Shown piece by piece: positions 5,985 to 29,925 of a stretch of 64,000 nt of DNA (the first letter of the stretch is position 1; the number at the start of each line of letters is the position of its first letter). A model generated the notes under the pieces. That model ran no database searches. It saw nothing but the letters and a program-made list of their open reading frames with translations, and was not told the origin of the DNA. The stretch lies in IMG/VR virus record IMGVR_UViG_3300041411_000080, positions 124,001 to 188,000 of that record. One strand, given 5' to 3'. Position numbers and translations under genes: made by a program.

Positions 5985-8900
5985 TTAGTAGCTAGGACCC
6001 TTAGAGATGATCCAAGTACTGATGCCGTTGTAGAAGGCAGTGATTACGGTCTGAGAACTACCGTATTCAATATCAGCCGCGGCAGTGTTGTTGTTGTACG
6101 CAACGGTAGGAGCACCGGTACCAGCAGCGAAGGACAACTTGTTAGTTGAACCAACGATGGTGAATACGCACATCATCGAGCGACCAGCAGCCAACTTAGG
6201 CAGAGTCACGGTGATACCAGCAGTAGTACCCGAAACCGAGTAGCAGTTCTGAGTTACTGGGTTAACCGTAAAGCTTGTGGTACGTGGAGTTTGGTCAGCC
6301 AGCAAAGTGTACGCATCGAAGGTCATTTCTGCCCACGAACCTACACCACTACCATCGACACTGTAACCGTACACCTTGTTAGCTGTGCCAGGAGCAGTAG
6401 CAACTTGGATTGGGGACAGAGCGAATGCACCATTCAACCACACGTATTGCTTACCAGCTGTTTGACCAGTAGGTACAGCGATTACGTTTACCCAGCCAGC
6501 CGAAGTACGACCTTGAGGAACAGTTGTGCCACCCGGAACTTCTGGAACACCGGTAGCAGGAACTACGAGTTCAGCCCAGACAGTCTTACCACCAGCAATG
6601 CCCTTACGGACGTACTGTGTATCAACCACTGGAGAAGGCACTTCATCAACCGGCAATGTTACCCAGTTGTCGCCCTCACGGACAACTTTACCAAGTGCGA
6701 TGTTAGGCGAGGAAATACCACCTGGGGTGATAGGACCGATACGTACCCAACCTGCACCCTCGTCTTTGTAGTAAGCCACAAAGTCGGTGGTAACTGCCCA
6801 GTCGCCCACGGTACCGTAGGTAGGAGTAGGAGCAGCAGTAGAGCTGAGGGTAAGCCACAGAGAACCACGATCACCTTTAACGCCCTTCTCACCTTTCAGA
6901 CCACGGATACCTTGCTCACCCTGATCACCCTTGTCGCCTTTGAACTGACCGGCGTTGTACCACTCGGTGGCACCGCCTACTGGGTTAACACCGTACAGGT
7001 ACAGATCGCCACCTACAGTGTAGGCTTCACCTGGAGAACCGGTAGGATGCGCGGCGATGAGATCACCCGCAGTTGCGTAGGAGCCTTGGATAGTGATACC
7101 TGGACCCATCACACCTTGGATACCTTGGATACCCTGAGGACCGTCTGCACCACGGATAGGAATACCTACACCGTATACACCAGCATCGTTCACTTGGTAC
7201 AGGGAACCGGTTTCTTCAACGTATACCGCATCGCCAGCATCCAAAGTGGAAGCCAGAGGACGGTCAGCCAGCAATGCGACTGTGTCTACGATGTTGATAC
7301 CTTGACCAGCAGGACCCTGAATACCTTGGATACCCTGATCACCTTTGAATTGACCAAGGTCAACCCACGTGGTGTTAATGTACATGTACAGATGACCATC
7401 AGCCAACGAGGTCCATGCATCTTGTTGAGCAGGAGTAGGCAAGGCTTGGATAGCAGCCAGATCAGCTTGAGAACCTTTAACCTGTACGTTCTTACCATCC
7501 GCGCCATCAGTACCGTTGGTACCATTAGTGCCTTTCAGAGACGCCAAGAATTCGGCTTCTGTCTTACCGGCATTACCCGGCTGAGTCAACCATAGTGCAT
7601 AGGTCGATTGACCAGCAGCACCGTCTTCACCGTCTGCCCCACGGAATGGACCAGCATCGATCCAAGTATCGGTGGCGTAGATCCACAGATTACCAGTATC
7701 ATCGGCAACCCAAGCATCTTGGTTGACAGGGGTAGGGAGAGCCTGAATGGCAGCAGCGTTAGCCTGAGTACCATTAACTTGCAGGTTCTTACCTTGCAGG
7801 GATTCGATCCACTCAGCTTCAGTGCCGACGAACCCTTCAACAACAGCCAGCTCGTAAGCAGACTGGCCGTCAGTACCATCGGTACCGTTCGTGCCGTTGG
7901 TACCCTTCAACGAAGCGAGGAACTCAGCCTCCGTCTTACCAACGTTACCGGCTTGCTCTTCCCACAGTTCGTAGGCAGATTGACCATTAGTACCGTTAGT
8001 ACCTTTCAGGCTATTGATGAAGTCTTGTGCAGTACCAGTGTTGCCCAGATCAAGCCAGACTTGGTATGCCGAAGCGCCGTCCAAAGAACCGAGGTTCTCA
8101 TAGTCGTTCTTCGAAGTGAACCAAACGAACAGATCTTTGTTAACGTAGTAAGCACGAGTAGGATCACCCGGACGTGGCAGTTGAGCTTCATCAGTCAGTT
8201 GATCGATGATCTCGAAGGCAGCAGCAGCTTCACCCTTCTCGCCTTTCAGCGAGGCAATGAATTCTACTTCAGTCTTACCGGCATTACCCGGTTGAGTCAA
8301 CCACAGCTGATAAGCTGATTGACCATGCAACGATTCGAGCCATACTTCAACAGTACCTACGAAACCGTCTTCTACAGCCAGTTGATAAGCGGACTTACCG
8401 TCTGGACCGATGTCACCGGTATCACCTTTGGTACCCTTGATGGAGTCAATAAACTCCTGCTCGGTTTTACCAGTATTACCCGGCAGTTGAAGCCAAGTCT
8501 GATAAGCCGAATCGCCTTTAGGACCCGGTACACCGATGTCTACCCACTGGCGTACAGGTTCTTCAACCAAAGTCCAGAGGGATTTATTAACATCACCAGC
8601 ACCCCAAACGTAGGTGTCACCAGCTACGTAGTTGTCACCCATAGGCAACGACAGGTTACCTGGCCACTCACCCAGATAGTTCAGACCTTTACCGTCTTTA
8701 CCACGGACGTTCGGGGATTGAACCCAGTCAGTACCGTTGTAAACGTAGATGAAGTCACCTACCCAGTAAGCATCAGCACTAACAGAGGTACCTTCCGATA
8801 CGATCTGATCGAACTCATCCTGAGTCAGGGTTGCCAGTACAGTGATTGGCTTACCATTCTGGCCGTCAGTACCATCGGTACCATTCTCGCCATCTGCACC

Positions 8901-10331
8901 TTTGAGGGACGCCAAGTAAACAGCCTGCGAACCAGTGTTACCTGCCGAAAGCCATACTTCATAAGCGGAGTCACCTTGTGCACCACGGTCACCTTTCAGC
9001 GACAGCAGGAATGCAGCAGTATCACCGGTGTTGCCCAGATCAAGCCACTCTTGGTAAGCAGACTTACCTTCAAGGCTTTCCAAGAACTCAGCTTCTGTCT
9101 TACCAACGTTAGCTGGCAGAGCTACCCAGAGGTCATACGCCGAAGCGCCGTCTTCCCCGTTCTCACCATTGGTGCCGTTAGTTCCGTCGGCGCCTTTAAT
9201 AGCAAGAATGAAATCAGCTTCTGTCTTACCGGCATTACCCGGCAAGGCTTCCCAGACTTCATATGCGGATTTACCATCTTCGCCATTGGTACCGTTAGTA
9301 CCATTGGTGCCACGCAGCGAAGTAATAAACTCTTGTTGAGTCTTACCTTCGTTACCTGGGATAGCAAGCCATACTTCATAAGCCGAGAGACCGTCCTCAC
9401 CATTCGTGCCGTTGGTACCATTAGTACCGTCTGCACCTTTCAGGCTAGCGATAAACTCAGCTTCTGTTTTGTTCTCGTTACCAGGCAAAGCTTTATAGGT
9501 GTCATAGGCAGATGCGCCATCATCACCATTAGTACCGTTGGTACCATCTTTACCCTTCAGGGATTCCAAGAACTCTGCTTCGGTCTTACCCGCGTTGGCA
9601 GGTACGGCTTCCCAGATCTCGTAAGCCGAAGCGCCGTCATCACCATCTGCGCCTTTCAGCGATGTGATGAAATCGGCTTCTGTACCCACGTTACCTTGAG
9701 CAACCCAGATCTGATAAGCAGACTTACCTTTCAGGGAATCCAGCCAAGCTGCTTCCGAACCTACGAAGCCACCTTCAACAGCAACCTGATAAGCAGAAGC
9801 ACCCACCAAGGTAGCAAGCCATTCAGCTTCAGTACCTACAGTAGGATCAATTTCTTTAGCGATCTCATAGGCAGATTTACCTTTGAGCGACGCAAGCCAC
9901 TGGGACTCGGTACCAACAAAGCCATTGGCCTTGGCGATATCGAATGCGGACTTACCTTGCAAAGACAGAAGCCATTCAGCCTCAGTCCCAACGAAACCAT
10001 TCTTAACGGCTTCATCGTAAGCAGATGGGCCAACCAGTGTGGCGAGCCATTGGGGTTCAGTACCGGTATAGCCAAGCTCTACCGCAAGTTCATATGCCGA
10101 CTTACCATTCAGTGTAAGCAACCATTCTTCTTCAGTGCCTTGATAACCGTTCTTCACAGCTACTTCATAAGCAGAGAGGCCTTGGTTGGTACGGATCTTG
10201 TTGATCAGAATGGAAAACGTTTTCCAAGTCCCGTCGCTTTGGCGAGAGGAGACTTCCATCAGCTCATCACCGGTGATGACCGCCAGTGGCGACATGCCCG
10301 AGATCATACCAGCTTTCTTTGGATCAGCCAT
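5985..10331 (-). CDS. Long collagen-like virion fibre protein
   Basis: 1448 aa; more than 20 GxSAY(E/Q)...GTEAE(W/F)LxSLxG repeats interleaved with Gly-X-Y triplets; distinct beta-rich C-terminal domain. Confidence 0.85.
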   Translation of the reverse strand: MADPKKAGMISGMSPLAVITGDELMEVSSRQSDGTWKTFSILINKIRTNQGLSAYEVAVKNGYQGTEEEWLLTLNGKSAYELAVELGYTGTEPQWLATLVGPSAYDEAVKNGFVGTEAEWLLSLQGKSAFDIAKANGFVGTESQWLASLKGKSAYEIAKEIDPTVGTEAEWLATLVGASAYQVAVEGGFVGSEAAWLDSLKGKSAYQIWVAQGNVGTEADFITSLKGADGDDGASAYEIWEAVPANAGKTEAEFLESLKGKDGTNGTNGDDGASAYDTYKALPGNENKTEAEFIASLKGADGTNGTNGTNGEDGLSAYEVWLAIPGNEGKTQQEFITSLRGTNGTNGTNGEDGKSAYEVWEALPGNAGKTEADFILAIKGADGTNGTNGENGEDGASAYDLWVALPANVGKTEAEFLESLEGKSAYQEWLDLGNTGDTAAFLLSLKGDRGAQGDSAYEVWLSAGNTGSQAVYLASLKGADGENGTDGTDGQNGKPITVLATLTQDEFDQIVSEGTSVSADAYWVGDFIYVYNGTDWVQSPNVRGKDGKGLNYLGEWPGNLSLPMGDNYVAGDTYVWGAGDVNKSLWTLVEEPVRQWVDIGVPGPKGDSAYQTWLQLPGNTGKTEQEFIDSIKGTKGDTGDIGPDGKSAYQLAVEDGFVGTVEVWLESLHGQSAYQLWLTQPGNAGKTEVEFIASLKGEKGEAAAAFEIIDQLTDEAQLPRPGDPTRAYYVNKDLFVWFTSKNDYENLGSLDGASAYQVWLDLGNTGTAQDFINSLKGTNGTNGQSAYELWEEQAGNVGKTEAEFLASLKGTNGTNGTDGTDGQSAYELAVVEGFVGTEAEWIESLQGKNLQVNGTQANAAAIQALPTPVNQDAWVADDTGNLWIYATDTWIDAGPFRGADGEDGAAGQSTYALWLTQPGNAGKTEAEFLASLKGTNGTNGTDGADGKNVQVKGSQADLAAIQALPTPAQQDAWTSLADGHLYMYINTTWVDLGQFKGDQGIQGIQGPAGQGINIVDTVALLADRPLASTLDAGDAVYVEETGSLYQVNDAGVYGVGIPIRGADGPQGIQGIQGVMGPGITIQGSYATAGDLIAAHPTGSPGEAYTVGGDLYLYGVNPVGGATEWYNAGQFKGDKGDQGEQGIRGLKGEKGVKGDRGSLWLTLSSTAAPTPTYGTVGDWAVTTDFVAYYKDEGAGWVRIGPITPGGISSPNIALGKVVREGDNWVTLPVDEVPSPVVDTQYVRKGIAGGKTVWAELVVPATGVPEVPGGTTVPQGRTSAGWVNVIAVPTGQTAGKQYVWLNGAFALSPIQVATAPGTANKVYGYSVDGSGVGSWAEMTFDAYTLLADQTPRTTSFTVNPVTQNCYSVSGTTAGITVTLPKLAAGRSMMCVFTIVGSTNKLSFAAGTGAPTVAYNNNTAAADIEYGSSQTVITAFYNGISTWIISKGPSY

Positions 10332-10404
10332 TGTGATTTCCTTTAAAAAATAGATTAACCACCCAATTTCGCCTTAGTAAAATAAGACACATACTGTTGG
10401 GTAT

Positions 10405-11199
10405 TTATTTCAAGCCGCCATGCTTCTTGAAAGCAGCTTCAAGCTTTTCATCGTACTTGTTAGCACGATAATTAGAGCCGTTGTAATAGCGGGCGAAAGT
10501 AACCCAGTCATCCTGACGAATCGCTTTCAGCAATACAGGGTTTGCCTTAATGAAACGCACGAAGCATTCCAATTGACCGCGTTCCGAAGACTTCAGCTTT
10601 TCGACGAATTCGTAAACGTCCTTGAACCCCAGTAGTTTCCAATGGTAACCCATTATCTGGTATGCACCCCACGAGCAGGACTCTAGTGCAGATACTTCGT
10701 GGATAGCCTTAGCTTGATCCAGGCGATTGTATTCAGCAGCCTTACCCAAATAACCCCCAGTTTTCTTACTGACGATATCTGGATACTTGGCCCAGTACTG
10801 TTCTGGATTAATACCGTTAGCAGCAAGCTGTCGGTACATCACGTGACGTTCGTAGAGAATGGTTACACGTCCATCTGGAAGGAAGCCACCTTGTGGAGCC
10901 TCAACCTCACGTACAGCCTTAATAGATGGTACGTCGTCAGCAAGGAACTCTGCTGCCCATTTAAAGTCTTCTTCCGTAAGCGACTTCAACGTGGTGTTAG
11001 GTGTGTTAAACACAGCCCAAGTTTTGTCACCTACAATCCCATCATCCTTGAGTTTGAATTTACGTTGTACTTCCTTAACGTAACGTTCAGTGGTATCACC
11101 AAAGACACCATCGTCTTTAAGGTCGTACCCAAGACTCTTCAGTTGACGCTGTAGTGCAGCAACCTGTTCCCCACGGGAACCATTCTTTAACAAAGCCAT
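10405..11199 (-). CDS. Modular endolysin: peptidoglycan-binding domain plus N-acetylmuramidase (DUF3380-type)
   Basis: LKNGSRGEQVAALQ...DGVFG...DGIVGDKTW binding domain; EVE...GF...ILYERH, SWGAYQIMG and FARYYNG motifs. Confidence 0.9.
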   Translation of the reverse strand: MALLKNGSRGEQVAALQRQLKSLGYDLKDDGVFGDTTERYVKEVQRKFKLKDDGIVGDKTWAVFNTPNTTLKSLTEEDFKWAAEFLADDVPSIKAVREVEAPQGGFLPDGRVTILYERHVMYRQLAANGINPEQYWAKYPDIVSKKTGGYLGKAAEYNRLDQAKAIHEVSALESCSWGAYQIMGYHWKLLGFKDVYEFVEKLKSSERGQLECFVRFIKANPVLLKAIRQDDWVTFARYYNGSNYRANKYDEKLEAAFKKHGGLK

Positions 11200-11200
11200 A

Positions 11201-11755
11201 TTAACCCCATGTCGCAGACAAGCGATGTTCAAGTTCGCGTGTCACGCCTTCTTCTGTATAGCGAATTGTTCCGGCTTCAAGATAGCGGGTCCATTGAGAG
11301 ACTGGAATCACCTCTACTTGAACAAGCGTCTTACCGATGTATGCATAGCTACCGGTCAGTGCTGTAAACTCATATTCAAAAGTGGTCCCAATAACTGGAA
11401 TCACTTCTTCAGAGAAAGATACATCACTTGGTCCAAATGTCATTCTTCGCGCCCGATTGATTTCGAGAGCGATGCTAGCCGGGGTGGGATCACCCATGAC
11501 CTTAATGCTAACTAGTGGTCCCAGACACCGGCGGTCTGAAAGCTCGAGACGACGGAATTCAAACCAGTCTTTGTGACTGGTTACTTTGTCAATCATCTCA
11601 ATGTAGCTTCGACCCGGTTCTACTTCCGTTGGAGAGAAGAACAAATCTTCAAAGGTAATGTACTCATCCTTCAGGTCAGGTCGGTTCTGGGATCGCCGGA
11701 CCAGTTCTACAAGTGCCTGACGAGAAGGCATGTTGTAGGGGAAACGATCGCTCAT
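11201..11755 (-). CDS. Putative virion structural protein with a C-terminal RYxExG repeat
   Basis: 184 aa; layout resembles the 29056 and 29933 ORFs (helix, then F/Y-x-R-L-D/E-L); ends RYLEAGTIRYTEEGVTRELE. Confidence 0.65.
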   Translation of the reverse strand: MSDRFPYNMPSRQALVELVRRSQNRPDLKDEYITFEDLFFSPTEVEPGRSYIEMIDKVTSHKDWFEFRRLELSDRRCLGPLVSIKVMGDPTPASIALEINRARRMTFGPSDVSFSEEVIPVIGTTFEYEFTALTGSYAYIGKTLVQVEVIPVSQWTRYLEAGTIRYTEEGVTRELEHRLSATWG

Positions 11756-11839: not shown

Positions 11840-12235
11840 TTAGGTAGCTGGTGGAGCATTAGAGGCAATGAGACTAAAGATCGACTGTGCGATTGACTTA
11901 AGTGCATCGATTGCTTCAGGGCTTAGGTGACCGCCAGTGACGACCAACCCAATTACGATCATAGCTAACAGGATTGCCCCGTACATGCTAATCCGTTTAT
12001 AATTCGAATCCCCCTTAAGATTAGCTACTGTGCGATTAAGCAAAGTAGTCTGCACGTCTATATCTTCGATGCTGTAAATGCGTTCGAGGATAATGTCACA
12101 TGGGGTATCAGGCGTGATAGGTTCAAAGCCAACCCTTTTGAGGTTAGCATTGATAAACGCGCGCAGTGGACGACCGTTGAGTTCATCCGACAAAGGATCG
12201 GTGCCCTGCTCACTAAGGAGTTGTTCGAGCTTCAT
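11840..12235 (-). CDS. Membrane protein (holin/antiholin candidate)
   Basis: One hydrophobic helix (ISMYGAILLAMIVIGLVVTGG); lies between the spanins and the endolysin. Confidence 0.45.
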   Translation of the reverse strand: MKLEQLLSEQGTDPLSDELNGRPLRAFINANLKRVGFEPITPDTPCDIILERIYSIEDIDVQTTLLNRTVANLKGDSNYKRISMYGAILLAMIVIGLVVTGGHLSPEAIDALKSIAQSIFSLIASNAPPAT

Positions 12236-12545
12236 TATTCATCTCCAGATGTTTGTCGTCCCAACTACGGATAGAATCAATCTGAAGATCACAGTTATAC
12301 AGGTTCCCTGTCTGACCTAAGTAGGCATCGTACATAATCAAGAATCTGGCTTCCCACACATTGGTAGCTGTAGGAAACAGATCAGTGGCATTTACGAGTT
12401 GTTCTTTGGTTGGCGGTGCATCAATCCTACATTTACTTTTCAGGACTGACGGCACTGCATCGTGTGTCTTGGGGGCGGGCACGACAATAGTTCTCGTGCA
12501 AGCGGTCAGCGAGGATACCAACACGATCAGCCCCATCAGGAACAT
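12213..12545 (-). CDS. o-spanin (Rz1-like outer-membrane lipoprotein)
   Basis: MFLMGLIVLVSSLTA-C lipobox, Pro-rich periplasmic part, further Cys residues; overlaps the i-spanin out of frame. Confidence 0.75.
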   Translation of the reverse strand: MFLMGLIVLVSSLTACTRTIVVPAPKTHDAVPSVLKSKCRIDAPPTKEQLVNATDLFPTATNVWEARFLIMYDAYLGQTGNLYNCDLQIDSIRSWDDKHLEMNNEARTTP

Positions 12546-12870
12546 CAGTTTTCGGAGTTGTTTCCTTAGCCGGTACCACAGGTTCGATTTTCTTAACGTA
12601 CTCATTGATTGTCTCTTTTCGGAAGTTGTCCGTAGCTAACTGGGACGTCTTGGCTTCAGTTGCGTAGTCTAAAACTACACGGTCAGTGATCTCAGCTGAT
12701 TTCTCCGCGTGGACCACATTTTGTTGTAGAGTCCCATTCTCCGTTTGTAGGCTTCCGTTCTCTACCAAGTTATTCGTGTACAGCTTCCATAATCCAAAGC
12801 TCCCCAATAAAAGTATTAGGATTACGATCACGAATATCTTAGTGCTTGCACTTTTAAACAGGGTGAACAT
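12433..12870 (-). CDS. i-spanin (Rz-like)
   Basis: N-terminal membrane helix (IFVIVILILLLGSFGLW), helical periplasmic domain, two C-terminal Cys; GAGG RBS. Confidence 0.75.
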   Translation of the reverse strand: MFTLFKSASTKIFVIVILILLLGSFGLWKLYTNNLVENGSLQTENGTLQQNVVHAEKSAEITDRVVLDYATEAKTSQLATDNFRKETINEYVKKIEPVVPAKETTPKTDVPDGADRVGILADRLHENYCRARPQDTRCSAVSPEK

Positions 12871-12880
12871 AGTCAACCTC

Positions 12881-13444
12881 TTAAAGTAGTTGCGATGAGT
12901 AGTAGTAGCCGATTGCAACCGAGTCGATAGAGTGTTCGTCTAGGGTATCGATATCGATATCATCCCATGCGAGTTCTTTCAAGTTAGCTAAGGCTCTGCG
13001 TACGTCTTCTTTGTCTGTGCCACGAATCTTAACCATCCCGATATTTGTCTTCACTGTAGTAGGATCGACGATTTGTAGGGGGAGGAATGGATCGTAGGCG
13101 TAACATGCGTTCCGTATAACTGTTACACACTCTACGAGGCTCGCAAACGCTGTTGCGAAGCGTCCTAGGTAGTTACCCTCCACGATGACACCATGTGGAC
13201 GATGCGTGCGTAAGAATAGGGTTACACGGTCATGTAGGATCATGAGCTTAGCTGCACGATTTCCGTGAAGCTCGGCCATTTCCTTATATCCGAATTCAGC
13301 TGGATTCAGCTTGACTGTTTCCGCTACCTTCACAATTGGCTTAGAACCATCTAAGTGGTTCTCGATAAGGGAAAGACCCAAGTTTGCACCTGGGTCAAAT
13401 CCAGCGATTCTAAAAGGTTCTAAACTTTTAGGCATCACTAACAT
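12881..13444 (-). CDS. ruvC: RuvC-like Holliday junction resolvase
   Basis: IAGFDPG, VIVE, PTTVK, KEDV and DEHSIDSVAIG acidic catalytic motifs. Confidence 0.85.
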   Translation of the reverse strand: MLVMPKSLEPFRIAGFDPGANLGLSLIENHLDGSKPIVKVAETVKLNPAEFGYKEMAELHGNRAAKLMILHDRVTLFLRTHRPHGVIVEGNYLGRFATAFASLVECVTVIRNACYAYDPFLPLQIVDPTTVKTNIGMVKIRGTDKEDVRRALANLKELAWDDIDIDTLDEHSIDSVAIGYYYSSQLL

Positions 13445-13453
13445 TTTAAGTCC

Positions 13454-14350
13454 TTAAACGAACTGAGCCTGTTGGACAGCGTTCGAGCCAAGGGTAGGTT
13501 CTACACCACCGATGTCGAAGGTCAGATCCAGACCACTGGAGTTATAACCGATCGGGTGGTTAGTCGAGATGAATACGTTTACTTGGCAAGCGATTACTTC
13601 GTTATACTGGAAGCCTTGACCCGGTGCAGTTACACGACGATCTACACCAGAACACAGACCCATCTCAGAGATGATCGGAGAGCGGATAGAACCAGTACGG
13701 ATACGGTGAGCATCGGTGATATCACGGATCTCTTCAGCACTCAGGCTAACCTTAACGATTGCCGAGGCCGATACAGTTTTGTTGGAACCGATTACGGTAC
13801 CACTGTTCGAGATAACTGGTGGGGTGGGGTTCAGGTCATCAACGGTAGGAGTGTAAGGCTTAGCGGTTACAACACCGTTAATAACTTCCAGTTCCAGTAG
13901 TTGTGGTTGTACACCGGTAACGTTAATACGACGACCGTAGTAAACGATGTAATTCTTACCACCGTGTGTTTCTTCAGTACGTAGACAATACTGGTCACGA
14001 CGATCCGCTGGAAGGTCTTGACTAGGCTCACGCATTACAAAAGGAATATGGTTGTAAAGAGCAGCATCGTTAGAACGGTGGATGCGGTTAGCAGTTTCAT
14101 CCGAACCGTCTGGACCTTTAACGAAGTAATGGCCCATGTTACCAATAACGAGGTAGCGAACGTTAGGCACTTCACCAGCAGCAGGAGCGATACCGTTTTC
14201 GATACCGAACTTCTCATTCAGTGTGGTGTGTGGAATAACGCGAAAAGGTGTAAGACCCAGATACTTGGTCGTTTGCAGATAAGCTGCATATGCAGTACGG
14301 GTTACGTTGATCAATTGTTGATCAATAGGGTTTGCGACAACGTCGGCCAT
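13454..14350 (-). CDS. Virion structural/baseplate protein (gp139-like)
   Basis: 298 aa; [21 protein letters not shown] and [11 protein letters not shown] motifs; synteny. Confidence 0.65.
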
Positions 14351-15935: not shown

Positions 15936-17282
15936 TTAGATGCGAATCGCGTATGTACCAGGACCCGTCTTCTGAGCAACTACCAAGGCGGTGTTGTAAC
16001 GACCACCGTTGAAGTTCATTGCATATTGACCGATCAACCAAGAGTTGACACCAGCTTCTGGATCATTCGCTTTACGTTGGATAGCTGCTAACGCTGCGTT
16101 ATAATCAGTTGATGCACCTTCAAGACCAACAAAGTAAACTGTACCCGCTTGAGCGTTGTAAGGTCTCAGGATATCGTCGATGTTAGCGTAGGTGTTATTA
16201 CCTGCTAACACGTAACGCCCTGGGTCCCAACCTTGTACCACTGGTGCGAAGTATGGCTCAGTAAACCGAGTATTAGGGTCGATGTTAGACGCATCCAAGT
16301 TAGCCTGAATATTACTGAACACTGTTGCTGCTGGTAATCCAGCAAAGCGTGCAGAGTCAGCTGCTGTTTGAGTGCGGGCCAGACGCAGTGCAAAGAGGTC
16401 AAGGATCTGCTGAGTGCTATACAGGTTCAACAGTGGGTCAGTCAGCAATACTTGGTGCGGGTTAGAGGTGTTAGCCACGTGTGCAGTCAAGAGCGGATGT
16501 GCGTGCGCAGCAAGCTGATTATAGATACCGCCGATTGGCTGGTATTTATTGTTAACTGTTTTAGTAGTCGACTCAGCTGTATTAGCCATTGGCCAGTTAT
16601 TCACGTTACCCAACTGGATCTTGATTTTATCGGTCTTGTGTGGATTAGCTCGATCAGCAATGTGAGCGTTAACCTGAAGTCGATATGAATCAACTGCTGC
16701 CTGCGCCAAGAGGATGTAGTTCTGATAATAGGTACGGTTCCCTTCAATCAGAGACTTACGTCCTAATGCCCACGCCTTACCCAAAGCATCCAGGTTGAAG
16801 TTAGTAGACTCCAATCCATAGAGTTGCCAGTATTCGTGTTCGTGATCATCAGGGACGTACTGAAGTGGTTTGTCAATAATGTCTTCCCACTTGATCTTAC
16901 CGGGAGCAGTCTCGGTTTCATCCAGTACAGCTTTCAGTTCTTTAAAGCTCAGCGCGTATGGTCCACCTACAGCACGATAAGTAATTCGCACTCCGGGGGT
17001 TACATCCTTGTTTGTCACCACGATGATAGCACAGACTTCTTTAGCAGTAACAGCGCCGAGGTCTTTGTAGTAATAAGTCACTACATAGTCTTTATCACGG
17101 ACCAATAACTTCCCATCGGCCTGGCGAACAACAAGTGACTCGGTGTAGAACGCACCGAAGTCAGGTGTGAACATTCGATTGACTCGACCATTAGCCTTAG
17201 TCAGTGTATGTTCCTCACCCTCTCGGTAGTTTGAAGCAAGTGTCCCCTTGAAGTCCAAGGGGAGTTTTGTGATCGTTGCCAT
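15936..17282 (-). CDS. Tail/baseplate fibre protein, gp131-135 family
   Basis: Shared N-terminal domain (LDFKG...N...GEEH, GAFYTESL, YRAVGG) and H-x5-NPH repeats. Confidence 0.75.
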   Translation of the reverse strand: MATITKLPLDFKGTLASNYREGEEHTLTKANGRVNRMFTPDFGAFYTESLVVRQADGKLLVRDKDYVVTYYYKDLGAVTAKEVCAIIVVTNKDVTPGVRITYRAVGGPYALSFKELKAVLDETETAPGKIKWEDIIDKPLQYVPDDHEHEYWQLYGLESTNFNLDALGKAWALGRKSLIEGNRTYYQNYILLAQAAVDSYRLQVNAHIADRANPHKTDKIKIQLGNVNNWPMANTAESTTKTVNNKYQPIGGIYNQLAAHAHPLLTAHVANTSNPHQVLLTDPLLNLYSTQQILDLFALRLARTQTAADSARFAGLPAATVFSNIQANLDASNIDPNTRFTEPYFAPVVQGWDPGRYVLAGNNTYANIDDILRPYNAQAGTVYFVGLEGASTDYNAALAAIQRKANDPEAGVNSWLIGQYAMNFNGGRYNTALVVAQKTGPGTYAIRI

Positions 17283-17291
17283 AATTACCTC

Positions 17292-18656
17292 TTAACGCCA
17301 ACCCGGTGAGTACCAAGTACCGTTACTGATGGTGGCCATTGCTAGGGTGGATACCGGTGTAGTGATCGCGCCGTTACTCGTACCAATACCGTAGGATGCA
17401 GTTGATCGGTAGACAGCAATCGTCCCGTTAGGCCAGTTAGTTCCTGCGATACTAGCGATCGTAGCTGGAGAAGCATTGTAATCAAGTGTACCGACGTAAA
17501 GGATCGTATTACCACGCTTAGCGAAGATATTGAAGATCGATTCAATCGAACGCCAACCCAAGATACCGAATACCGATGGAGCTAGTACGTAACCAGATCC
17601 TTGATAGATCTGACCGCAGAAGACTTGCCATGGGAAAATGCCGGTCGTAATGTTTCTTACTGGGATCGCATATCGAACGTTGCTGTAGAACGTACCGAAG
17701 CTCCGACCACCAAGAGCCAATGTAGATCGTACCGTATCTCCACGCGTGTAATACTCGTTAGCTTTCTGGTTCATTTCGACATTAGTCATCGTCCCCAGTT
17801 TAGCAGCGGTATCTTGGTGTGGGTTATTCAAGTCTTGGATGTGAGACAGTAGCTGTGGTGTGAAGTTAGTTGCAATCGACTGTGCTGCTCGTAAAGGAGT
17901 AGCATAGGCATTCATTACAGTACCCGAGGCCGTCTGCGCTTGCCCTATAGTTGCAGGAGCATTGTTATACACAAATTGCAACTGGACTTGTTCAGCCGTT
18001 ACGTCATGCGGGTCGGTCTGGTCTTGGATGTGAGAAGTCAATCGTGCTTCTACGTCCGCAAGGTCGGTCTTCACTGCATCAAACTTAGTGCTGAACTCAC
18101 CGTACAGATTATCAAACTCCCGCTTGGTCATCTTGTCTAGAGCGGTTGTCATCCGATGAATGATTGCCGTCTGTGGAGTAAACCCAAAGAGTTCCCACAA
18201 TGCGTGCAAGTGACCATTAGGTCGGAAGCTACTTGGTTTACCCGTGAGGTTCTTCCAGAATACCTTACGGTTAGCCGAACGGATAACGTTAGCGGCTTGC
18301 TCCAAGATAGCCGTGTTCAATGAGCAGTATACACCACCCACCATCTGAGCTTCGATGTACAGGAAGTTGCCGATACTTGGATTCGTAACAACCAACACAG
18401 CGCATGCAGTCAAACCACGCTTCTTAGCGATCGTCGGTTCCATCAGCAAGCACTGATAGTCTTTGTCTTCTTCGAGGACGTGACCACGGTTGTCGATGAT
18501 GTACATGTTATCGGTGTAGAAATAACCTTTCTCCATTACCACAATGCGGTAAGGTAGATCGAATTGCGGGGAAAGATCATGGACCTCCCCTTTAGTCCGG
18601 TTATCAGGGGACTCACCCGACCAATCGATCGGTAGAGCTTGTAATACAGGAATCAT
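17292..18656 (-). CDS. Tail/baseplate fibre protein, gp131-135 family
   Basis: Same N-terminal domain (DWSGESPDN...GEVH, GYFYTD, QMVGG); HIQDQTDPH and HIQDLNNPH. Confidence 0.75.
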   Translation of the reverse strand: MIPVLQALPIDWSGESPDNRTKGEVHDLSPQFDLPYRIVVMEKGYFYTDNMYIIDNRGHVLEEDKDYQCLLMEPTIAKKRGLTACAVLVVTNPSIGNFLYIEAQMVGGVYCSLNTAILEQAANVIRSANRKVFWKNLTGKPSSFRPNGHLHALWELFGFTPQTAIIHRMTTALDKMTKREFDNLYGEFSTKFDAVKTDLADVEARLTSHIQDQTDPHDVTAEQVQLQFVYNNAPATIGQAQTASGTVMNAYATPLRAAQSIATNFTPQLLSHIQDLNNPHQDTAAKLGTMTNVEMNQKANEYYTRGDTVRSTLALGGRSFGTFYSNVRYAIPVRNITTGIFPWQVFCGQIYQGSGYVLAPSVFGILGWRSIESIFNIFAKRGNTILYVGTLDYNASPATIASIAGTNWPNGTIAVYRSTASYGIGTSNGAITTPVSTLAMATISNGTWYSPGWR

Positions 18657-18665
18657 GTAATCACC

Positions 18666-20027
18666 TCAAAGTTGAATCCAACCGGATGCTGATTTATACG
18701 AGCCGAACACGATCGGGAAACTGTTGACGTATGTACCGTTACCAGCACCCCAGATGTATTGCGTTTGCACACGGTAGAAAGCGATCGATCCAACTGGAGC
18801 ACTGAATGCCCATGGTTGACTGATAACAAACTGGTGACCTTGTGCAGCTGAACCCATTGCTCCGATAGGGAATACCTGTGGAGAAGGAGGTGGGCCATGG
18901 TTGATGATAATCGAGTCCCATGTTACCCATTGACCATCACCGTTCAGTGCAGTGTTAGCACTAGGTGTGCCTCGACCGATACGACGTGGGTCAATCCAAC
19001 CTGCTGAAGCATCAGCGACGAAATTGGGAGCTGGGATATTACGCCGAGCGAACTGGTAGTACTCGTTATAGCCGTAAGCGGTTGCACCGTCTGTAAAGAT
19101 ATCGGCGTTAACAACTTGCTCGTTACGAAGATACTTAGAATTAACAGCTGCATCTACCACGGGCTTGCGTGGAGCACTGATAGTCTCAGGTGTAGTCTGG
19201 TGTGGGTTAGAACGGTTACCAATGTGCAGGTTGAGAGGCTTGATAGCTTTCTCATCAATGGTAGCCCAAGACAACAGCGGCGTCAGATACAAGTTGTTAG
19301 CTGTGGCCGCACGTGCATCGAGTTCTGTTGCCAAAGCATAGTTCTCGACAAGGTTCAACCCTACGTCGTCTTTGGTATCTTGATGAGGGTTAGCCTCATC
19401 ACGGATATGTCGTTCCAGTCGGTCGTTAAAGAGATCTAGGAACGCGTTATAATCAGCCAAGACCTTATCGCGATACTCTTGCTCGTAGTTACCGGACAGA
19501 CCTTGTACAGCCCGGCGCATCTTGTAGATTTCATTGTTGAACGGTTGGTATGTGTCTAAGGCCCATCGTTCCTTATCCAGCTCACCGGGTTTCCAGATAG
19601 GTTCATTACCCGCATAATCCTTGGACTTTGGAATATAACCATCGGGTTGTTGATTGTACCAACTAATGTAATCCTCAACTGTGGTTAAGCTGAAGGCTAC
19701 ATCACCACCGACCATCTGTGCAGACAGATATACTTGTCCAGAGAGGTTAGGGTCGAGGAACACAATTACACCTTCTACGTCCAAACCTAGTTTATCACTA
19801 AGGTTAGCGTAGCGATAAGTAAAAATGTAATCAACGCCAAGTGTCATCTTAGCATACGACGAGTTATAGACCCGAAGTGTATCAGAATAGAATCCGCCAT
19901 TGTCCATCGGCAAGATCTTGTAAGGAAAACCGTTGATCGATTGAAGATCATGGGGTTCACCGGGAATCAGGTTATCAGGGTTTCGTCCGGTGGGGTCGTA
20001 CGATAACCTTACGTAAATGTTAGCCAT
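18666..20027 (-). CDS. Tail/baseplate fibre protein, gp131-135 family
   Basis: DPTGRNPDNLIPGEPH, GGFYSD, QMVGG; HIRDEANPH and HIGNRSNPH. Confidence 0.75.
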   Translation of the reverse strand: MANIYVRLSYDPTGRNPDNLIPGEPHDLQSINGFPYKILPMDNGGFYSDTLRVYNSSYAKMTLGVDYIFTYRYANLSDKLGLDVEGVIVFLDPNLSGQVYLSAQMVGGDVAFSLTTVEDYISWYNQQPDGYIPKSKDYAGNEPIWKPGELDKERWALDTYQPFNNEIYKMRRAVQGLSGNYEQEYRDKVLADYNAFLDLFNDRLERHIRDEANPHQDTKDDVGLNLVENYALATELDARAATANNLYLTPLLSWATIDEKAIKPLNLHIGNRSNPHQTTPETISAPRKPVVDAAVNSKYLRNEQVVNADIFTDGATAYGYNEYYQFARRNIPAPNFVADASAGWIDPRRIGRGTPSANTALNGDGQWVTWDSIIINHGPPPSPQVFPIGAMGSAAQGHQFVISQPWAFSAPVGSIAFYRVQTQYIWGAGNGTYVNSFPIVFGSYKSASGWIQL

Positions 20028-20102
20028 GTCATCTCCGAAAAGGATATAGCAACAGAAGGAGACACCGGGTTGCCCAAGTGCTCCTTCTGCTGCTCGGTTT
20101 AG

Positions 20103-20426
20103 TTACAGATCATCAGCCGCGTCAGCAAAAGCGTCACCGATAACTTTGTAGATGTTTTCATCTGCATAGTCGTCGACACGTTTCGGAGTCATGAATGCGT
20201 TGTTACTCAGGCCACGCTTGGCTTGAACCAAAGAAGCTGGTAGCCAATCGGGAACGTTACCCAAACCAATATCAGCTGGTTCCATATCGTGCACGTTACC
20301 TGTCGCAGTTGTATGCGCATTCAGACGATTGCGTATTGTGGTAAACTTCTGAAGCACGCTACCGAAGTATTGTGCCATAACCGTTTTGAGTTGCGAAAGC
20401 TTGACGGTATAATCAGTCATTGCCAT
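20103..20426 (-). CDS. Short gp131-family paralogue
   Basis: AHTTATGNVHDMEPADIGLGNVPDWLPAS nearly repeats AHIQATGNVHDMVPADIGLGNVPNWLPAS of the upstream gene. Confidence 0.7.
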   Translation of the reverse strand: MAMTDYTVKLSQLKTVMAQYFGSVLQKFTTIRNRLNAHTTATGNVHDMEPADIGLGNVPDWLPASLVQAKRGLSNNAFMTPKRVDDYADENIYKVIGDAFADAADDL

Positions 20427-20440
20427 GATAGGACCTCCCT

Positions 20441-22654
20441 TTATGGACTGACAGTTTCAATGTACTTGCCACCGCGCCAGACCAACGAGTTGTCAGGAGA
20501 ATCACCCCAGAACTCAGCATAGTTTTGACTGTTGACAGTTACAGTGAAGCCATAGCCAGCAGCTACAGCCAAGAAAGGACCAGAGGCAGGAGTAATCTCC
20601 AACTGACCCATAGATTCGTCGCCAAAGGAAAGAAGATCCGACAGATCTGTATCTGGACCAATAGGCTTGGTAAATACAAAGTGTCCGAAACTACCCGCAA
20701 GACTAGACGCACCAGTAATAGTAGAAGCAGCAGCCAGTAGACCAGTCGAGTGATCGCGTACCAGTGTGGAACCAGATACGTCAGTCAGAGTGATGCTTGC
20801 CCCGTAGTTGAGTCGGTAGACCCAGATAAAGGTGTCATCATCTTTCTGTACCAATACCACCACATACTCAGAACCGATTCGCATATCAACGATTTCGAAT
20901 GCGCCGGTAGAAGCACGCGTCTTAACAGCGTTGAATGCCGTAACCCAGCTAGCGTCGCCCAAACCAGTCCATGTAGTATCACCACCAGCGTCCTGTGTTT
21001 CGATAACACAGAAAGCACGCGGATCAGTCAATCCATTATTACCGAAGAGGCTGAATACGTCGGCATGAACACCCATAGAGGTTTCAGTACCGTTGCGGTC
21101 AATCCGAACAATGGTTTCATCGTTTGCACGAATCATGTAGACGTGATCTTTCGAAGCGTAGATACTCGAGAGCTTGCCAGTGGTGTCAGAAGAACCAGCA
21201 GCATACTTAGGTGGGATAACGATTGCACCCGTACCAGAAGTCTCTACATAGCCCAGAGGGTTAATGTAGTAAGATGCATCCACTGATGTAGACCATTTAC
21301 CCGGAGCCCCTTCCAGCGCACCGGTAGGGAAGTCTTGAGCGTAAGCTGTGTCAGCAACAATGTAGCCATTACCCAACGAGTTGTACAATCCGTAAGCTTG
21401 GTACTCACCGAAACCCCAACTGATCTTAGATGCATTGCGTTCAGCAATATCACCTGGAGTTACTGGGTCTTCTACATCGAGTTCACCCAGTGAGGTGTTA
21501 GCCGACAGATAAACTTCAAACAGTTGTTGTAAGATCTCATTGATATCCCCTACAGCAGGGAACATAGAAATCCATTCGTCTGGAGTCTTACCATCGAACG
21601 TAGCTGCATCACCACCTTGTTCAAGTGCTTGAAGCTTCTCATCGATTTGTTCGGACGTATAGGTACCGATCAACTGAGGGGTGATATCGTGAGGATTCTG
21701 TGCAGTCAAGTGATTATTGAAATCAATGATCAGCTGATCTAGTCGTGGATCGTTCTGAAGCTTTTGGATCAGCAAGCTGGTCGTATAAGGCGTCATGAAC
21801 GAAGTGTTGTTCGTTGGATCAATCGCATTGACTGGCGAAGCTGGCAACCAGTTAGGGACGTTGCCCAAGCCGATGTCAGCAGGTACCATGTCGTGGACGT
21901 TACCCGTAGCTTGAATGTGTGCATTCAAAGGCACCACAGCAAACTTGTTAACCAACAGTTGTACACCACGGGGGTTCGTAAACAAATCGTTACGAGTTGC
22001 ATCAAGGTGTTGTTGGTCATTCGCCATTGCAAAGTTAGGTACGTTACCGAGACCTACTTGGATGGCAGTTACAACGTGTGGGTTGTTACGATCGTCAATG
22101 TGAGACTTGGATGTTCCTTCAGCAGTAGCTTCAAGGATCTCTGCGATTTTCTCGAGAGTAGCATTGATCTCTGCGGAACCCACCAGACTGTCGATACGTT
22201 GATCGTGCGGTAGAGGTGGGAACGAGTACGGAAGTACATCGATATCACCCCAACTACGAATGAGTGGGTTGAGATGTTTATTGGACAGTTCGCGAAGGAT
22301 AGCCTGATCGCTGAAGCCCCATGGGCCACCCAGAGTTCGATAAGTCAGACGAACTTGACCTACGATAGATGGTTTCATGAATCGAATACTACCGGCGATA
22401 GGACGACCAGTCGAATTCATTGCTTCAATGAAGAGGTGACCCACCTGGTAGTCATCACCTTCCACGTAAGGTTGCGAGGTTGCTGGGTTGACTACGATAA
22501 GGGAGTCAACAAAGAACGGCGCGGCCTTCGGGATAATAAAATAGTAATCGTTTGGACCAGGAGCCTGTAGCGTATGTGTCTCGCTAGGAATCAGGTTACT
22601 CGGCAGGGTCCCATTAAGGTCTTCTGGATACAGAAACGTGGTGCTGTAAGCCAT
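20441..22654 (-). CDS. Tail/baseplate protein, gp131-like
   Basis: 737 aa; family N-terminal domain, three His repeats, beta-propeller-like C-terminus (VAAGYGFTV). Confidence 0.75.
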   Translation of the reverse strand: MAYSTTFLYPEDLNGTLPSNLIPSETHTLQAPGPNDYYFIIPKAAPFFVDSLIVVNPATSQPYVEGDDYQVGHLFIEAMNSTGRPIAGSIRFMKPSIVGQVRLTYRTLGGPWGFSDQAILRELSNKHLNPLIRSWGDIDVLPYSFPPLPHDQRIDSLVGSAEINATLEKIAEILEATAEGTSKSHIDDRNNPHVVTAIQVGLGNVPNFAMANDQQHLDATRNDLFTNPRGVQLLVNKFAVVPLNAHIQATGNVHDMVPADIGLGNVPNWLPASPVNAIDPTNNTSFMTPYTTSLLIQKLQNDPRLDQLIIDFNNHLTAQNPHDITPQLIGTYTSEQIDEKLQALEQGGDAATFDGKTPDEWISMFPAVGDINEILQQLFEVYLSANTSLGELDVEDPVTPGDIAERNASKISWGFGEYQAYGLYNSLGNGYIVADTAYAQDFPTGALEGAPGKWSTSVDASYYINPLGYVETSGTGAIVIPPKYAAGSSDTTGKLSSIYASKDHVYMIRANDETIVRIDRNGTETSMGVHADVFSLFGNNGLTDPRAFCVIETQDAGGDTTWTGLGDASWVTAFNAVKTRASTGAFEIVDMRIGSEYVVVLVQKDDDTFIWVYRLNYGASITLTDVSGSTLVRDHSTGLLAAASTITGASSLAGSFGHFVFTKPIGPDTDLSDLLSFGDESMGQLEITPASGPFLAVAAGYGFTVTVNSQNYAEFWGDSPDNSLVWRGGKYIETVSP

Positions 22655-29056: not shown

Positions 29057-29925
29057 TGCTAATGACTAGAGACTACTTGAAAGCCGACCCTTGGGACGCT
29101 CTCATTGCGCGTATAAACGACCTCTACCAAATCGAGCTGCAACCTTACACCACTAAGCTGATCGAGCTTCAGTCGCAGGGTGGGACACGTACCCGTGTGG
29201 TTATCGGTCCTAACCAAAGTGCCTCTGAGACAAACACTGCTCCTGCTGTAGAACGTACGGAATATTTCTACGATCGCTTGGATCTGGCAAGTTTCTTTAA
29301 AGGTGGAGTTAAACAAGTAGGTGGCTTTCAGCTGCCTACTGATACCTTCAAGATCTTGGATGCGATTAGTGAATTGAATGACATCACCTTCACACTGAAT
29401 GATTTCATGCATGTTCAGTATGATGCTTACGGTCAGACTTACACGCTCACGGCCAACCCTAAGTCAATGCGTTTTGTAGGTTCGGTTCAGTTCCAATTGG
29501 TTAACACCACCAAGCGACTATTGTCTGATCAAGGTAGCGTACGTGAGTTCCCTGATGCTAACCCATTTCCTTTGGGTGCTTCAGGAGATAAGCTAATCGC
29601 TCAGTACATGACATCAGGTTTTGACTTTACCGATGAACGTGAATTCTTGAAGACGCTAGATAAAGATTCTATTTGGCCTACCGGTAAGAAGCTTGCAGCA
29701 ATTCTACAGGACGTCACCAAACGTCCGTGGGTGTGCTCTGACACAGAAGTCGAGTGGAACATAGCCTACGAGGCTAAGAACGGTGAGGGGCGCTTAGAGG
29801 TGATCTACAACGGCATTGTATTGCCAAGGTTCTCTCCACGTAAAGATATCCGTCGGGTATTGGTATTGCGTACCAGTGAACTGAGTACTAACGTCGATGG
29901 CTATCTGCTGTTGCACTATAACTGA
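29056..29925 (+). CDS. Virion structural protein (gp127-like)
   Basis: 289 aa; YDRLDL motif; translationally coupled. Confidence 0.65.
   Translation: MLMTRDYLKADPWDALIARINDLYQIELQPYTTKLIELQSQGGTRTRVVIGPNQSASETNTAPAVERTEYFYDRLDLASFFKGGVKQVGGFQLPTDTFKILDAISELNDITFTLNDFMHVQYDAYGQTYTLTANPKSMRFVGSVQFQLVNTTKRLLSDQGSVREFPDANPFPLGASGDKLIAQYMTSGFDFTDEREFLKTLDKDSIWPTGKKLAAILQDVTKRPWVCSDTEVEWNIAYEAKNGEGRLEVIYNGIVLPRFSPRKDIRRVLVLRTSELSTNVDGYLLLHYN

Follow-up and report, generated by a model that had tools for sequence, protein, structure and literature searches.

Two proteins encoded at one locus of a giant Pseudomonas phage, a small virion protein with a repetitive C-terminal tail and a long tail fibre with a distinct N-terminal module, raise the question of whether the tail peptide serves as the attachment point of the fibre. 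The window, which comprises the 64,000 nucleotides at positions 124,001 to 188,000 of the record IMGVR_UViG_3300041411_000080, lies in a 320-kb 201phi2-1/phiKZ-like jumbo phage. An earlier note, based on the sequence alone, proposed that the fibre N-terminus binds the repeat peptide and that one fibre could thereby be mounted both on the small structural protein and on read-through capsid subunits. As described below, the observation behind this proposal holds and is stronger than stated. The central inference is supported in silico by two independent computational lines, whereas mounting on the capsid by read-through is plausible but untested. We refer to the repeat peptide as the plug, defined as R-x-[TL]-E-[DEN]-G-x-x three times at a protein end, and to the fibre module as the socket. 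The relevant features of the window are:

5985–10331 (-), tail fibre of 1448 aa, orthologue of 201phi2-1 gp230 and related to phiKZ gp145
10182–10331 (-), socket, the N-terminal module of about 50 aa of the fibre
10405–11199 (-), endolysin (PG_binding_1 and N-acetylmuramidase) between the plug and fibre genes, with a likely ATG at 11199, 1 nt after the upstream stop
11201–11755 (-), 184-aa virion protein, orthologue of phiKZ gp143 and 201phi2-1 gp228, with a folded N-domain (aa 1–153) and a disordered C-tail
11228–11287 (-), plug 1, three 8-residue repeats at aa 157–176 of the 184-aa protein
11840–12235 (-), orthologue of the phiKZ gp142 holin, upstream of the plug gene and partner of gp143 in the published lysis-regulator model
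29056–29925 (+), orthologue of phiKZ gp127 (DUF7941), an outer-baseplate protein whose N-domain fold matches that of the plug-bearing protein
38283–38310 (-), GC-rich hairpin plus T-run, terminator-like, directly after the stop codon of the capsid extension
38326–38409 (-), plug 2, 28 codons in frame after the capsid TGA (repeat core 38329–38391), ending in TAA at 38323–38325
38410–40635 (-), major capsid protein gene, phiKZ gp120 orthologue, ending in TGA at 38410–38412

Two plugs and one socket in the genome

The 184-aa protein belongs to the phiKZ gp143 family, as seen from its match to phrog_2935 (E 7.7e-41 over aa 1–177) and from tblastn identities of 72% to 201phi2-1 gp228 and 45% to PHIKZ143, with 69 Pseudomonas jumbo-phage records matched in total, all covering at least 80% of the query. 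The gene order of the window (spanins, holin-like protein, 184-aa protein, endolysin, fibre) is shared with 201phi2-1, Phabio, PhiPA3, PS119XW and phiKZ. The holin-like protein was identified by phrog_14484 (1.4e-33), its position and a single C-terminal hydrophobic helix, the endolysin by PF11860 (1.6e-63), PF01471 (1.8e-16) and its position, which is that of phiKZ gp144 and 201phi2-1 gp229, and the fibre by phrog_3904 (4.8e-181), other tail-fibre PHROGs and synteny. The major capsid protein matches phrog_3231 (9.2e-249) and gp120 of PDB 8y6v (1075.6 bits, E given as 0).

The C-terminus of the 184-aa protein comprises, after QWT, the three repeats RYLEAG-TI, RYTEEG-VT and RELE, running from R157 to E176 with units at 157, 165 and 173, followed by H and the terminal RLSATWG. 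This matches the position of about 11225–11285 given in the earlier note, although the third unit is R-x-L-E rather than a full RYxExG, and the conserved pattern is R-x-x-E-x-G with a period of 8 rather than RY specifically. Residues R157, E160, R165, E168, G170, R173 and E176 are invariant, or nearly so, in 6 named phages and 28 metagenome homologues. In an AF2 model of the monomer the pLDDT is 85–93 for aa 1–153 but below 50 for the tail, as expected of a docking peptide, and the tail does not dock on its own domain.

The fibre lies two genes downstream, as had been noted, and begins with a unique module of about 50 aa that precedes its SAYE/GTE repeats. The earlier note began this module at the second Met. 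However, homologues conserve the upstream start (MADxKKAGMISG...) and residues 5–11 lie in the predicted interface, so the start is the ATG at 10331. No Pfam family covers the socket, and Pfam and PHROG scans of the isolated peptides gave no family beyond the parent PHROGs.

The second plug follows the TGA of the capsid gene in frame, where a linker (NGEGSS) leads into RYTEDG-LSL-RYEESG-IA-RGPER, i.e. three units with 9- and 8-residue spacing. Chance occurrence is ruled out by scans of all six frames of the 320,858-bp genome, in which a plug profile hits only the 184-aa tail (E 5.7e-13) and the 28 codons after the capsid TGA (E 1.1e-10), with the next hit at E 0.11, and a socket profile hits only this fibre (E 2.7e-30, next 0.13).

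The same arrangement after the capsid gene is present in 10 of 10 Pseudomonas chimalliviruses examined, all with TGA and with a frame open for 25–30 codons, and the extension shows protein-level constraint, with 4–5 synonymous codons at invariant R and G positions. In addition, a gp143 profile reaches the end of the phiKZ capsid gene through its TGA (E 1.4e-4). In these comparisons the trailer was always handled as its own reference piece, and no alternative genetic code was applied. We considered whether the trailer could be a separate small gene, but no conserved in-frame start lies before the repeats, and the short CDS annotated in Viktualia is in another frame. UGA read-through itself has not been demonstrated, neither production of the extended protein nor its presence in virions was measured here, and literature searches on phiKZ read-through found no report of a capsid extension. 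A hairpin is also present at the same place after the extension in the relatives. The socket, gp143 tail and capsid extension are all present in phiKZ and Noxifer, whereas the socket profile finds nothing in Goslar or LucasX. This co-occurrence within chimalliviruses is largely that of one clade.

Predicted docking of the tail on the fibre trimer

Modelling a fibre trimer with the peptide against controls had been suggested beforehand as a test of the inference, with absence of predicted binding counting against it. We predicted the complex of three copies of fibre residues 1–110 with residues 151–184 of the tail, which gave ipSAE values of 0.68, 0.81 and 0.76 (median 0.76), compared with 0.00 for the best of 3 controls, with a partner pLDDT of at least 62 and at least 67% of contacts shared between runs. 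This mark was reached by 58 of 80 solved complexes and by 2 of 110 mismatched pairs, although these counts hold only roughly here because we supplied our own alignments and used a design of 3+1 chains, which differs from the calibration. The score is the model's own confidence, and no measurement of binding exists. Sequence searches of the PDB with the 184-aa protein, the fibre N-terminus, the socket profile and the plug profile gave nothing meaningful, and thus the result is not recall of a solved complex.

The predicted geometry is pseudo-threefold, with each repeat located at one of the three subunit interfaces. Residues 154–179 of the tail form the predicted interface with all three fibre chains, and the contact residues of each chain are 5–11, 28 and 35–38. 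Repeats 1, 2 and 3 contact residue 9 of chains 2, 1 and 3, and residue 38 of chains 3, 2 and 1, respectively.

An alternative is that the tail is a head-to-tail docking element of DUF7941-type proteins, which binds the N-domain of another gp143/gp127-type protomer and builds filaments, such as the "fiber cloud" proposed for Goslar, in which case the capsid extension would anchor such filaments and the long fibre would attach by other means. The Goslar preprint reports AlphaFold head-to-tail models for gp22 and gp23 as well as EM filaments of gp22, lists phiKZ gp143 as DUF7941, and predicts that the tails of gp143-like DUF7941 proteins dock on the N-domain of the next protomer rather than on a fibre. 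Goslar gp23 is the positional orthologue next to the endolysin, and its tail shares DNVADGF with the in-frame extension after the Goslar capsid TGA. Consistent with a relationship to this family, the best Foldseek match of the N-domain is PHIKZ127 in the phiKZ outer baseplate (9xqd_0, E 8.3e-7, TM 0.59/0.71, 14% identity), the identity of the gp127 orthologue in the window being supported by PF25613 (87 bits) and PHIKZ127 of 9xqd_0 (3.5e-61). By sequence, gp143 homologues match only weakly to the first half of PF25613, with 29.3 bits for homologue P0034 (profile positions 4–152 of 276) and 18.3 bits for phiKZ gp143 against a gathering score of 27 bits, whereas the window protein gives no hit even at E 10. 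The fibre/tail pair is the only complex that was modelled, and head-to-tail oligomers were not examined. The fibre trimer with the capsid extension, gp143 with gp143, the gp143 tail with the gp127 N-domain, the gp143 N-domain with the gp139 orthologue, and J-like tails with their downstream proteins from the survey loci were not modelled. We consider this alternative unlikely, because the triple tail of R-x-T-E-D-G type occurs on many carriers with no DUF7941 domain (see below), what those loci share is the socket-bearing next gene, and the fibre/tail model passes its controls, but the two readings can coexist.

Plug and socket genes in other phages

The earlier note had stated that socket-type N-termini and such repeats often co-occur in phage fibre loci, and had named co-occurrence as a further check. 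This co-occurrence is real. A survey of IMG/VR that asked only for two TEDG units returned 38 loci, of which 26 carry the motif at the C-terminus of a protein. Of these 26, 22 have exactly three units and none has four, and in 22 the protein ends 0–3 residues after the last unit. The carriers are mostly lambda-J-like tail proteins (phrog_1101/6284), but include a wedge-like protein and small ORFs. In 20 of the 26 contigs the next gene, 0–46 nt away on the same strand, starts with the ISxL...LxGxE module by regex, or in 22 when two seen by HMM or by eye are counted, compared with 21 of 1833 ORFs overall (about 1%), most of which are those same genes. The downstream proteins include pectate-lyase-like, YadA-head-like and fibritin-like proteins, which are trimeric receptor binders. 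Clustering of the carriers by BLAST was confounded because short ORFs joined through the shared tail, and we therefore give no count of independent lineages and refer only to the distinct PHROG families.

In Erwinia phage RAY, a gp143-like protein with an L-type triple tail is directly followed by a collagen-like fibre with the socket. The socket profile missed this fibre, which was found by reading the DNA downstream of the RAY plug. A search with a single narrow peptide pattern from the socket alignment returned six loci, five of them close relatives, and only the remaining contig (L034) was informative, as it also carries a triple repeat. A large representative protein search and read data were not used. 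In the window itself the socket gene is the next gene but one after plug 1, with the endolysin between, and lies 27 kb from the capsid plug, an arrangement that leaves it undecided whether the direct adjacency seen in RAY and in 20–22 of the 26 survey loci applies here.

These data also bear on the possibility that there is no functional pairing, such that the complex score is a false positive, the gene order reflects a mobile two-gene cassette or a shared junction sequence (for example a recombination seam), and the frame after the capsid TGA is not translated. In favour of this view, 2 of 110 mismatched pairs reached the mark, short charged repeats can dock promiscuously in models, no extension peptide has been reported and a hairpin terminator follows the region. 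However, the conservation is at the protein level, with exactly three units and the stop right after, the controls scored 0.00, and the carriers and downstream proteins are otherwise unrelated, so only the two short modules travel together. Moreover, the Goslar tail and capsid extension changed motif together. We therefore regard this possibility as improbable.

Interpretation and comparison with known systems

We suggest, with moderate confidence, that the three-repeat tail is a docking peptide and that the first 50 or so residues of the fibre, assembled as a trimer, are its receptor. In this view, each unit (R-x-x-E-x-G-x-x) lies in one of the grooves between neighbouring subunits, between the residue 5–11 segment of one chain and the residue 35–38 segment of the next, such that a single asymmetric chain satisfies a three-fold symmetric fibre. 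The phage would offer this plug twice, first at the end of the gp143-type protein, whose folded domain has the fold of the outer-baseplate protein gp127 and probably acts as an adaptor, and second on the rare capsid subunits made when the ribosome reads through the UGA. In phiKZ the capsid C-termini meet at the centre of each hexamer, so this plug would project from there. What the analysis establishes is that both plugs and the single socket exist and are conserved, that the tail is disordered when modelled alone and that the plug-then-socket gene order occurs across unrelated phages, whereas the binding and its geometry rest on a model only, and translation of the capsid extension, the presence of fibres on the head and the location of gp143 on the baseplate are inferred. 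Double mounting is consistent with a genome that holds one socket and two plugs, but remains an inference.

Some published findings do not fit readily with this interpretation. phiKZ gp143, as the earlier note did not know, has a demonstrated effect on holin timing (PMC12894885) and is dispensable by TnSeq, whereas gp145 and gp146 tolerate no insertions. gp143 therefore cannot be the only mount of an essential fibre. The 2026 cryo-EM atlas of phiKZ shows neither gp143, gp145/146 nor capsid fibres. The Goslar preprint, as described above, predicts a different docking partner for the tails of gp143-like proteins; Goslar itself has a different tail motif and no detectable socket. It could be argued that gp143 is only a cytoplasmic holin regulator with a regulatory or turnover tag as its tail, the likeness to the capsid trailer reflecting coupling of lysis timing to capsid output. 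Indeed, the gene sits inside the lysis cassette, and gp143 advances holin triggering by about 10–15 min and can block a truncated holin (PMC12894885), an activity known only from expression experiments with phiKZ genes and not assayed here. However, the published model places the holin contact on the first globular domain rather than the tail, orthologues are virion proteins by mass spectrometry (201phi2-1 gp228), and the same tail ends tail-hub proteins of phages with no such cassette, directly before fibre genes. We consider this explanation very unlikely.

A broader reading, which is possible but tentative, is that of a general docking code for phage receptor-binding proteins, where one chain with three R-x-T-E-D-G-type units fills the three-fold N-terminal socket of a fibre or tailspike trimer. 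Many tailed phages would use it on tail hubs, and Pseudomonas chimalliviruses, including phiKZ, would also display it at capsid hexamer centres through programmed UGA read-through, such that the same fibre would decorate head and tail. If the plug-and-socket reading is right, it would name the unknown attachment site of the essential gp145-type fibres, show a recoding event at the end of the capsid gene of a much-studied model phage, and give a short sequence rule (a three-unit tail on the platform and an ISxL...LxGxE start on the fibre) for pairing receptor-binding proteins with their platforms across many unrelated phages, which would help in annotating fibre loci and in understanding how receptor-binding modules are exchanged. 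It would also offer a simple structural answer to symmetry mismatch, because one pseudo-threefold chain serves one trimer. We found no Pfam family, PDB entry or paper describing the pair, and literature searches with the motifs returned nothing relevant.

The closest relatives of the 184-aa protein are the phiKZ gp143 lysis regulator and the 201phi2-1 gp228 virion protein, which are orthologues by sequence (45–72% identity), length and position between holin and endolysin and carry the same C-terminal triple repeat, although the published function concerns holin timing, and neither the tail nor its copy after the capsid gene is discussed in the two papers on gp143 that we read (PMC12894885 and the Goslar preprint). 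The DUF7941 proteins of chimalliviruses (phiKZ gp126/gp127 and Goslar gp22/gp23) are likewise virion-associated, and the architecture of a short globular domain plus a disordered tail is that of Goslar gp23, but the tail motif differs from that of Goslar and the partner proposed here is a fibre trimer rather than another DUF7941 domain.

Minor capsid species with a C-terminal extension made by recoding at the end of the major capsid gene are represented by Qbeta A1 (UGA read-through of coat) and T7 gp10B (-1 frameshift). Here, by contrast, the phage is a 320-kb dsDNA jumbo phage and the extension, for which read-through is inferred, is only 28 aa and consists of a docking motif also found on a tail-associated protein. 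In T7 gp17, the P22 tailspike head-binding domain, the anchor-branch depolymerases of Klebsiella phages and the adenovirus fibre on penton base, a short N-terminal module of a trimeric fibre fixes it non-covalently to a virion platform and allows modular exchange of the distal part, and in adenovirus the symmetry mismatch is solved by flexible peptides. No sequence or Pfam relation to those anchors was found, and in the arrangement proposed here the platform supplies one peptide with three internal repeats that fills a trimeric socket. Lastly, lambda gpJ-like tail tip proteins (phrog_1101/6284) are the commonest carriers of the same C-terminal plug in our survey and are followed by a separate receptor-binding gene, whereas the window phage places the plug on a small gp127-like protein and on the capsid protein instead of a tail hub.

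A conserved three-unit tail and the N-terminal module of the fibre

The window is bases 124001–188000 of a 320,858-bp virus record with terminal repeats, which DNA and protein matches place next to Pseudomonas phages 201phi2-1 and Viktualia within the phiKZ-like nucleus-forming jumbo phages. The genes of interest all lie on the minus strand of the window, in the same order as 201phi2-1 gp224–gp230 and phiKZ gp139–gp146:

13454–14350 (-), gp139-like DUF7208 protein
next in order (-), RuvC-like protein
12213–12918 (-), two overlapping frames (161 aa and 130 aa) matching Rz-like spanin PHROGs, corresponding to the i-spanin/o-spanin pair described for phiKZ gp141 and gp141.1
11840–12235 (-), gp142-like holin
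11201–11755 (-), 184-aa protein
10405–11199 (-), endolysin
5985–10331 (-), 1448-aa fibre

The 184-aa protein ends with three 8-residue units, RYLEAG-TI, RYTEEG-VT and RELE, at aa 157–176 (window 11228–11287), and the repeat tail described in the earlier note is therefore confirmed. The pattern R-x-x-E-x-G with a period of 8 is kept in 201phi2-1, Phabio, PhiPA3, PS119XW, phiKZ and Noxifer, as well as in 28 metagenome homologues, and most family members stop right after the third unit. In an AlphaFold2 model built with a 28-row alignment, residues 1–153 fold confidently, whereas the tail has a pLDDT below 50, so that it is a conserved but disordered end.

The fibre begins with a module of about 50 residues that precedes its SAYE/GTE repeats. 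The start is the ATG at 10331, eight codons upstream of the Met chosen in the earlier note, and this start is conserved by homologues. One or two fibre genes per phage at this locus share the module, including phiKZ gp145. A laboratory stock of 201phi2-1 has lost residues 248–541 of the orthologous fibre gp230 (9420–13862 of L001, the 201phi2-1 locus) without visible effect on plating (PMC11512511); much of the repeat shaft is therefore dispensable, and the N-terminal module is retained. The endolysin at the gp144 position (window 10405–11232 (-)) has PG_binding_1 plus an N-acetylmuramidase domain (PF11860), as in 201phi2-1 gp229. phiKZ gp144, at the same position, is a lytic transglycosylase, so the catalytic module appears to have been exchanged. 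In phiKZ the endolysin is also a structural part of the neck whisker ring (PMC13250141).

An open in-frame trailer after the capsid gene

A second copy of the tail follows the major capsid gene (38410–40635 (-), phrog_3231, PDB 8y6v gp120), which ends in TGA and is followed in frame by 28 codons encoding a short linker and the same three units, then TAA and a terminator-like hairpin (TGA to TAA, window 38323–38412 (-)). The arrangement was found in all ten Pseudomonas chimalliviruses examined, namely the window phage, 201phi2-1, Viktualia, PS119XW, Phabio, PhiPA3, phiKZ, Noxifer, D6 and RVTF4 (relatives' loci L002, L003, L008–L011 and L014–L016). The stop is TGA in all ten, the frame is always open, for 25–30 codons, and a purine-rich GGAAAGGG-like stretch sits 4–12 nt after the TGA in most of them. 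The invariant R and G positions use four or five synonymous codons, which indicates selection on the peptide. No conserved in-frame start lies before the repeats; if the trailer is translated, it must be by read-through. Read mapping and alternative genetic codes were not applied. A profile of the gp143 family reaches the end of the phiKZ capsid gene through its TGA (E 1.4e-4). In the window phage's own genome, a profile of the three-unit tail (the plug) hits only the 184-aa protein and the capsid trailer (E 5.7e-13 and 1.1e-10, next hit 0.11), and a profile of the fibre N-terminal module (the socket) hits only the fibre.

In phiKZ the capsid C-terminal arms form a six-helix bundle at each hexamer centre, and in pentons they touch the outer protein gp244 (PMC11297242). 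An extension would therefore start at the capsomer centre, and we infer that it points outward. Elsewhere in the window (31465–31935 (-) and 32459–32917 (-)), a 156-aa ORF gives a weak Peptidase_S80 (prohead protease) hit (E 0.0037) and may be the diverged protease paralogue noted for 201phi2-1 gp206 (PMC5694885); two genes upstream of it lies a GNAT acetyltransferase among the structural genes.

Predicted fibre–tail complex and gene neighbourhoods

The earlier note inferred that the fibre N-terminus binds the repeat peptide, and had named modelling of a fibre trimer with the peptide against controls as a way to check this. Three copies of fibre residues 1–110 were modelled with tail residues 151–184, each chain with its own alignment. 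The scores (ipSAE) were 0.68, 0.81 and 0.76 (median 0.76), whereas the best of three controls scored 0.00; the partner pLDDT was at least 62 and the runs shared at least 67% of contacts. The mark used was reached by 58 of 80 solved complexes and 2 of 110 mismatched pairs, counts that hold only roughly for our design. In the model, tail residues 154–179 touch residues 5–11, 28 and 35–38 of all three chains. Unit 1 meets residue 9 of chain 2 and residue 38 of chain 3, unit 2 meets residue 9 of chain 1 and residue 38 of chain 2, and unit 3 meets residue 9 of chain 3 and residue 38 of chain 1, so that there is one unit per subunit interface. This supports binding but does not show it. As neither part has a PDB relative, the pass is not recall of a solved complex.

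The earlier note also stated that such fibre N-termini and TEDG-type repeats often co-occur in phage fibre loci, and had proposed a survey of co-occurrence. IMG/VR was scanned for DNA able to encode TEDG-x-x-R-x-TEDG, which returned 38 loci (L035–L072). In 26 of these the motif is at the very end of an ORF; 22 of the 26 have exactly three period-8 units, although only two were asked for, and none has four. In 22 of the 26 the protein ends 0–3 residues after the last unit. The carriers are mostly lambda-J-like tail proteins (phrog_1101/6284), with other tail proteins and small ORFs. In 20 of the 26 by regex, or 22 counting two seen by HMM or by eye, the next gene on the same strand starts 0–46 nt downstream with M..KKISxLxxAxxLxGxELxEV, whereas the same regex hits 21 of 1833 ORFs of 80 aa or more in these loci, most of which are these same genes. 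The downstream proteins include pectate-lyase-like, YadA-head-like and fibritin-like proteins, and no Pfam family covers their N-terminal module. The co-occurrence is therefore real and strong.

The remaining twelve loci carry the repeat internally, for example near the N-terminus of a baseplate-wedge-like protein (phrog_180) and in a loop of phrog_3287 virion proteins. Several very short ORFs (42–95 aa) consist of little more than the tail and might be extensions of upstream genes or small adaptors. Two further cases fit the pairing. A contig found from the socket side (L034) carries an internal triple repeat in a virion protein. In Erwinia phage RAY (L026, record 254213–257578), a gp143/DUF7941-like protein of 198 aa ends with an L-type triple repeat (LLTESG-QW-LTTEDG-QP-LKLES), and about 60 nt later a collagen-like fibre begins, whose first residues carry the ISGLP...GTELVPVVQ socket motif. 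The RAY capsid gene ends in TAA without an extension.

The plug-and-socket interpretation is thus supported by a model with clean controls, by the match between three units and three subunits, and by a very non-random gene order across unrelated phages. The tail, its second copy and the gene order are read from the sequences themselves, whereas it is unproven that the proteins bind, that the capsid trailer is made and that fibres sit on the head. No Pfam family, PDB entry or paper describing the pair was found in the resources consulted, which did not include a large representative protein search, and this is not proof that none exists. We consider the plug–socket pairing moderately likely, whereas the full picture, with the plug also displayed on the capsid, is only tentative.

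The carrier protein and its counterparts in phiKZ and Goslar

The best structural match of the folded domain of the 184-aa protein is chain 0 of 9xqd, PHIKZ127 (Foldseek E 8.3e-7, TM 0.59/0.71). The Goslar preprint lists phiKZ gp126, gp127 and gp143 as DUF7941 proteins and proposes head-to-tail filaments; Pfam support for gp143 members is marginal, and there is none for the window protein. An adaptor role, with the domain on the baseplate rim and the tail holding the fibre, is our inference.

Published experiments give phiKZ gp143 a different, demonstrated role, in that it advances holin triggering, with a predicted contact between its first globular domain and the holin N-terminus (PMC12894885). 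In addition, gp143 tolerates transposon insertions, while gp145 and gp146 do not. These facts do not contradict a docking tail, but they do mean that gp143 cannot be the sole mount of an essential fibre, which leaves room for the capsid plug or for a mount not yet seen. The phiKZ atlas models neither gp143 nor gp145/146, and its twelve peripheral baseplate fibres are formed by gp131–135 paralogues. The corresponding genes in the window are four paralogous fibre/baseplate genes (15936–22654 (-); 448, 454, 453 and 737 aa; phrog_2163/13857), whose N-termini differ from the socket module.

Goslar gp23 (2863–3405 of L028, its Goslar locus) is an abundant DUF7941 protein and the positional orthologue of gp143: it is 181 aa long, lies next to the endolysin, aligns over its full length and is reported at about 2,140 copies per virion. 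It ends with a different motif containing DNVADGF. The Goslar capsid gene (its end is locus L017) also ends in TGA, followed by 28 open in-frame codons that contain the same heptad, so that the pairing of capsid trailer and tail exists there with a different motif. The tail of the gp143-type protein and the capsid trailer have thus changed together in two distant lineages, which argues that both are translated and share a partner. No socket was detected in Goslar, where the models of the preprint suggest that the partner is a DUF7941 N-domain; this is the main support for the rival reading, in which the tail docks head-to-tail on such a domain rather than on a fibre.
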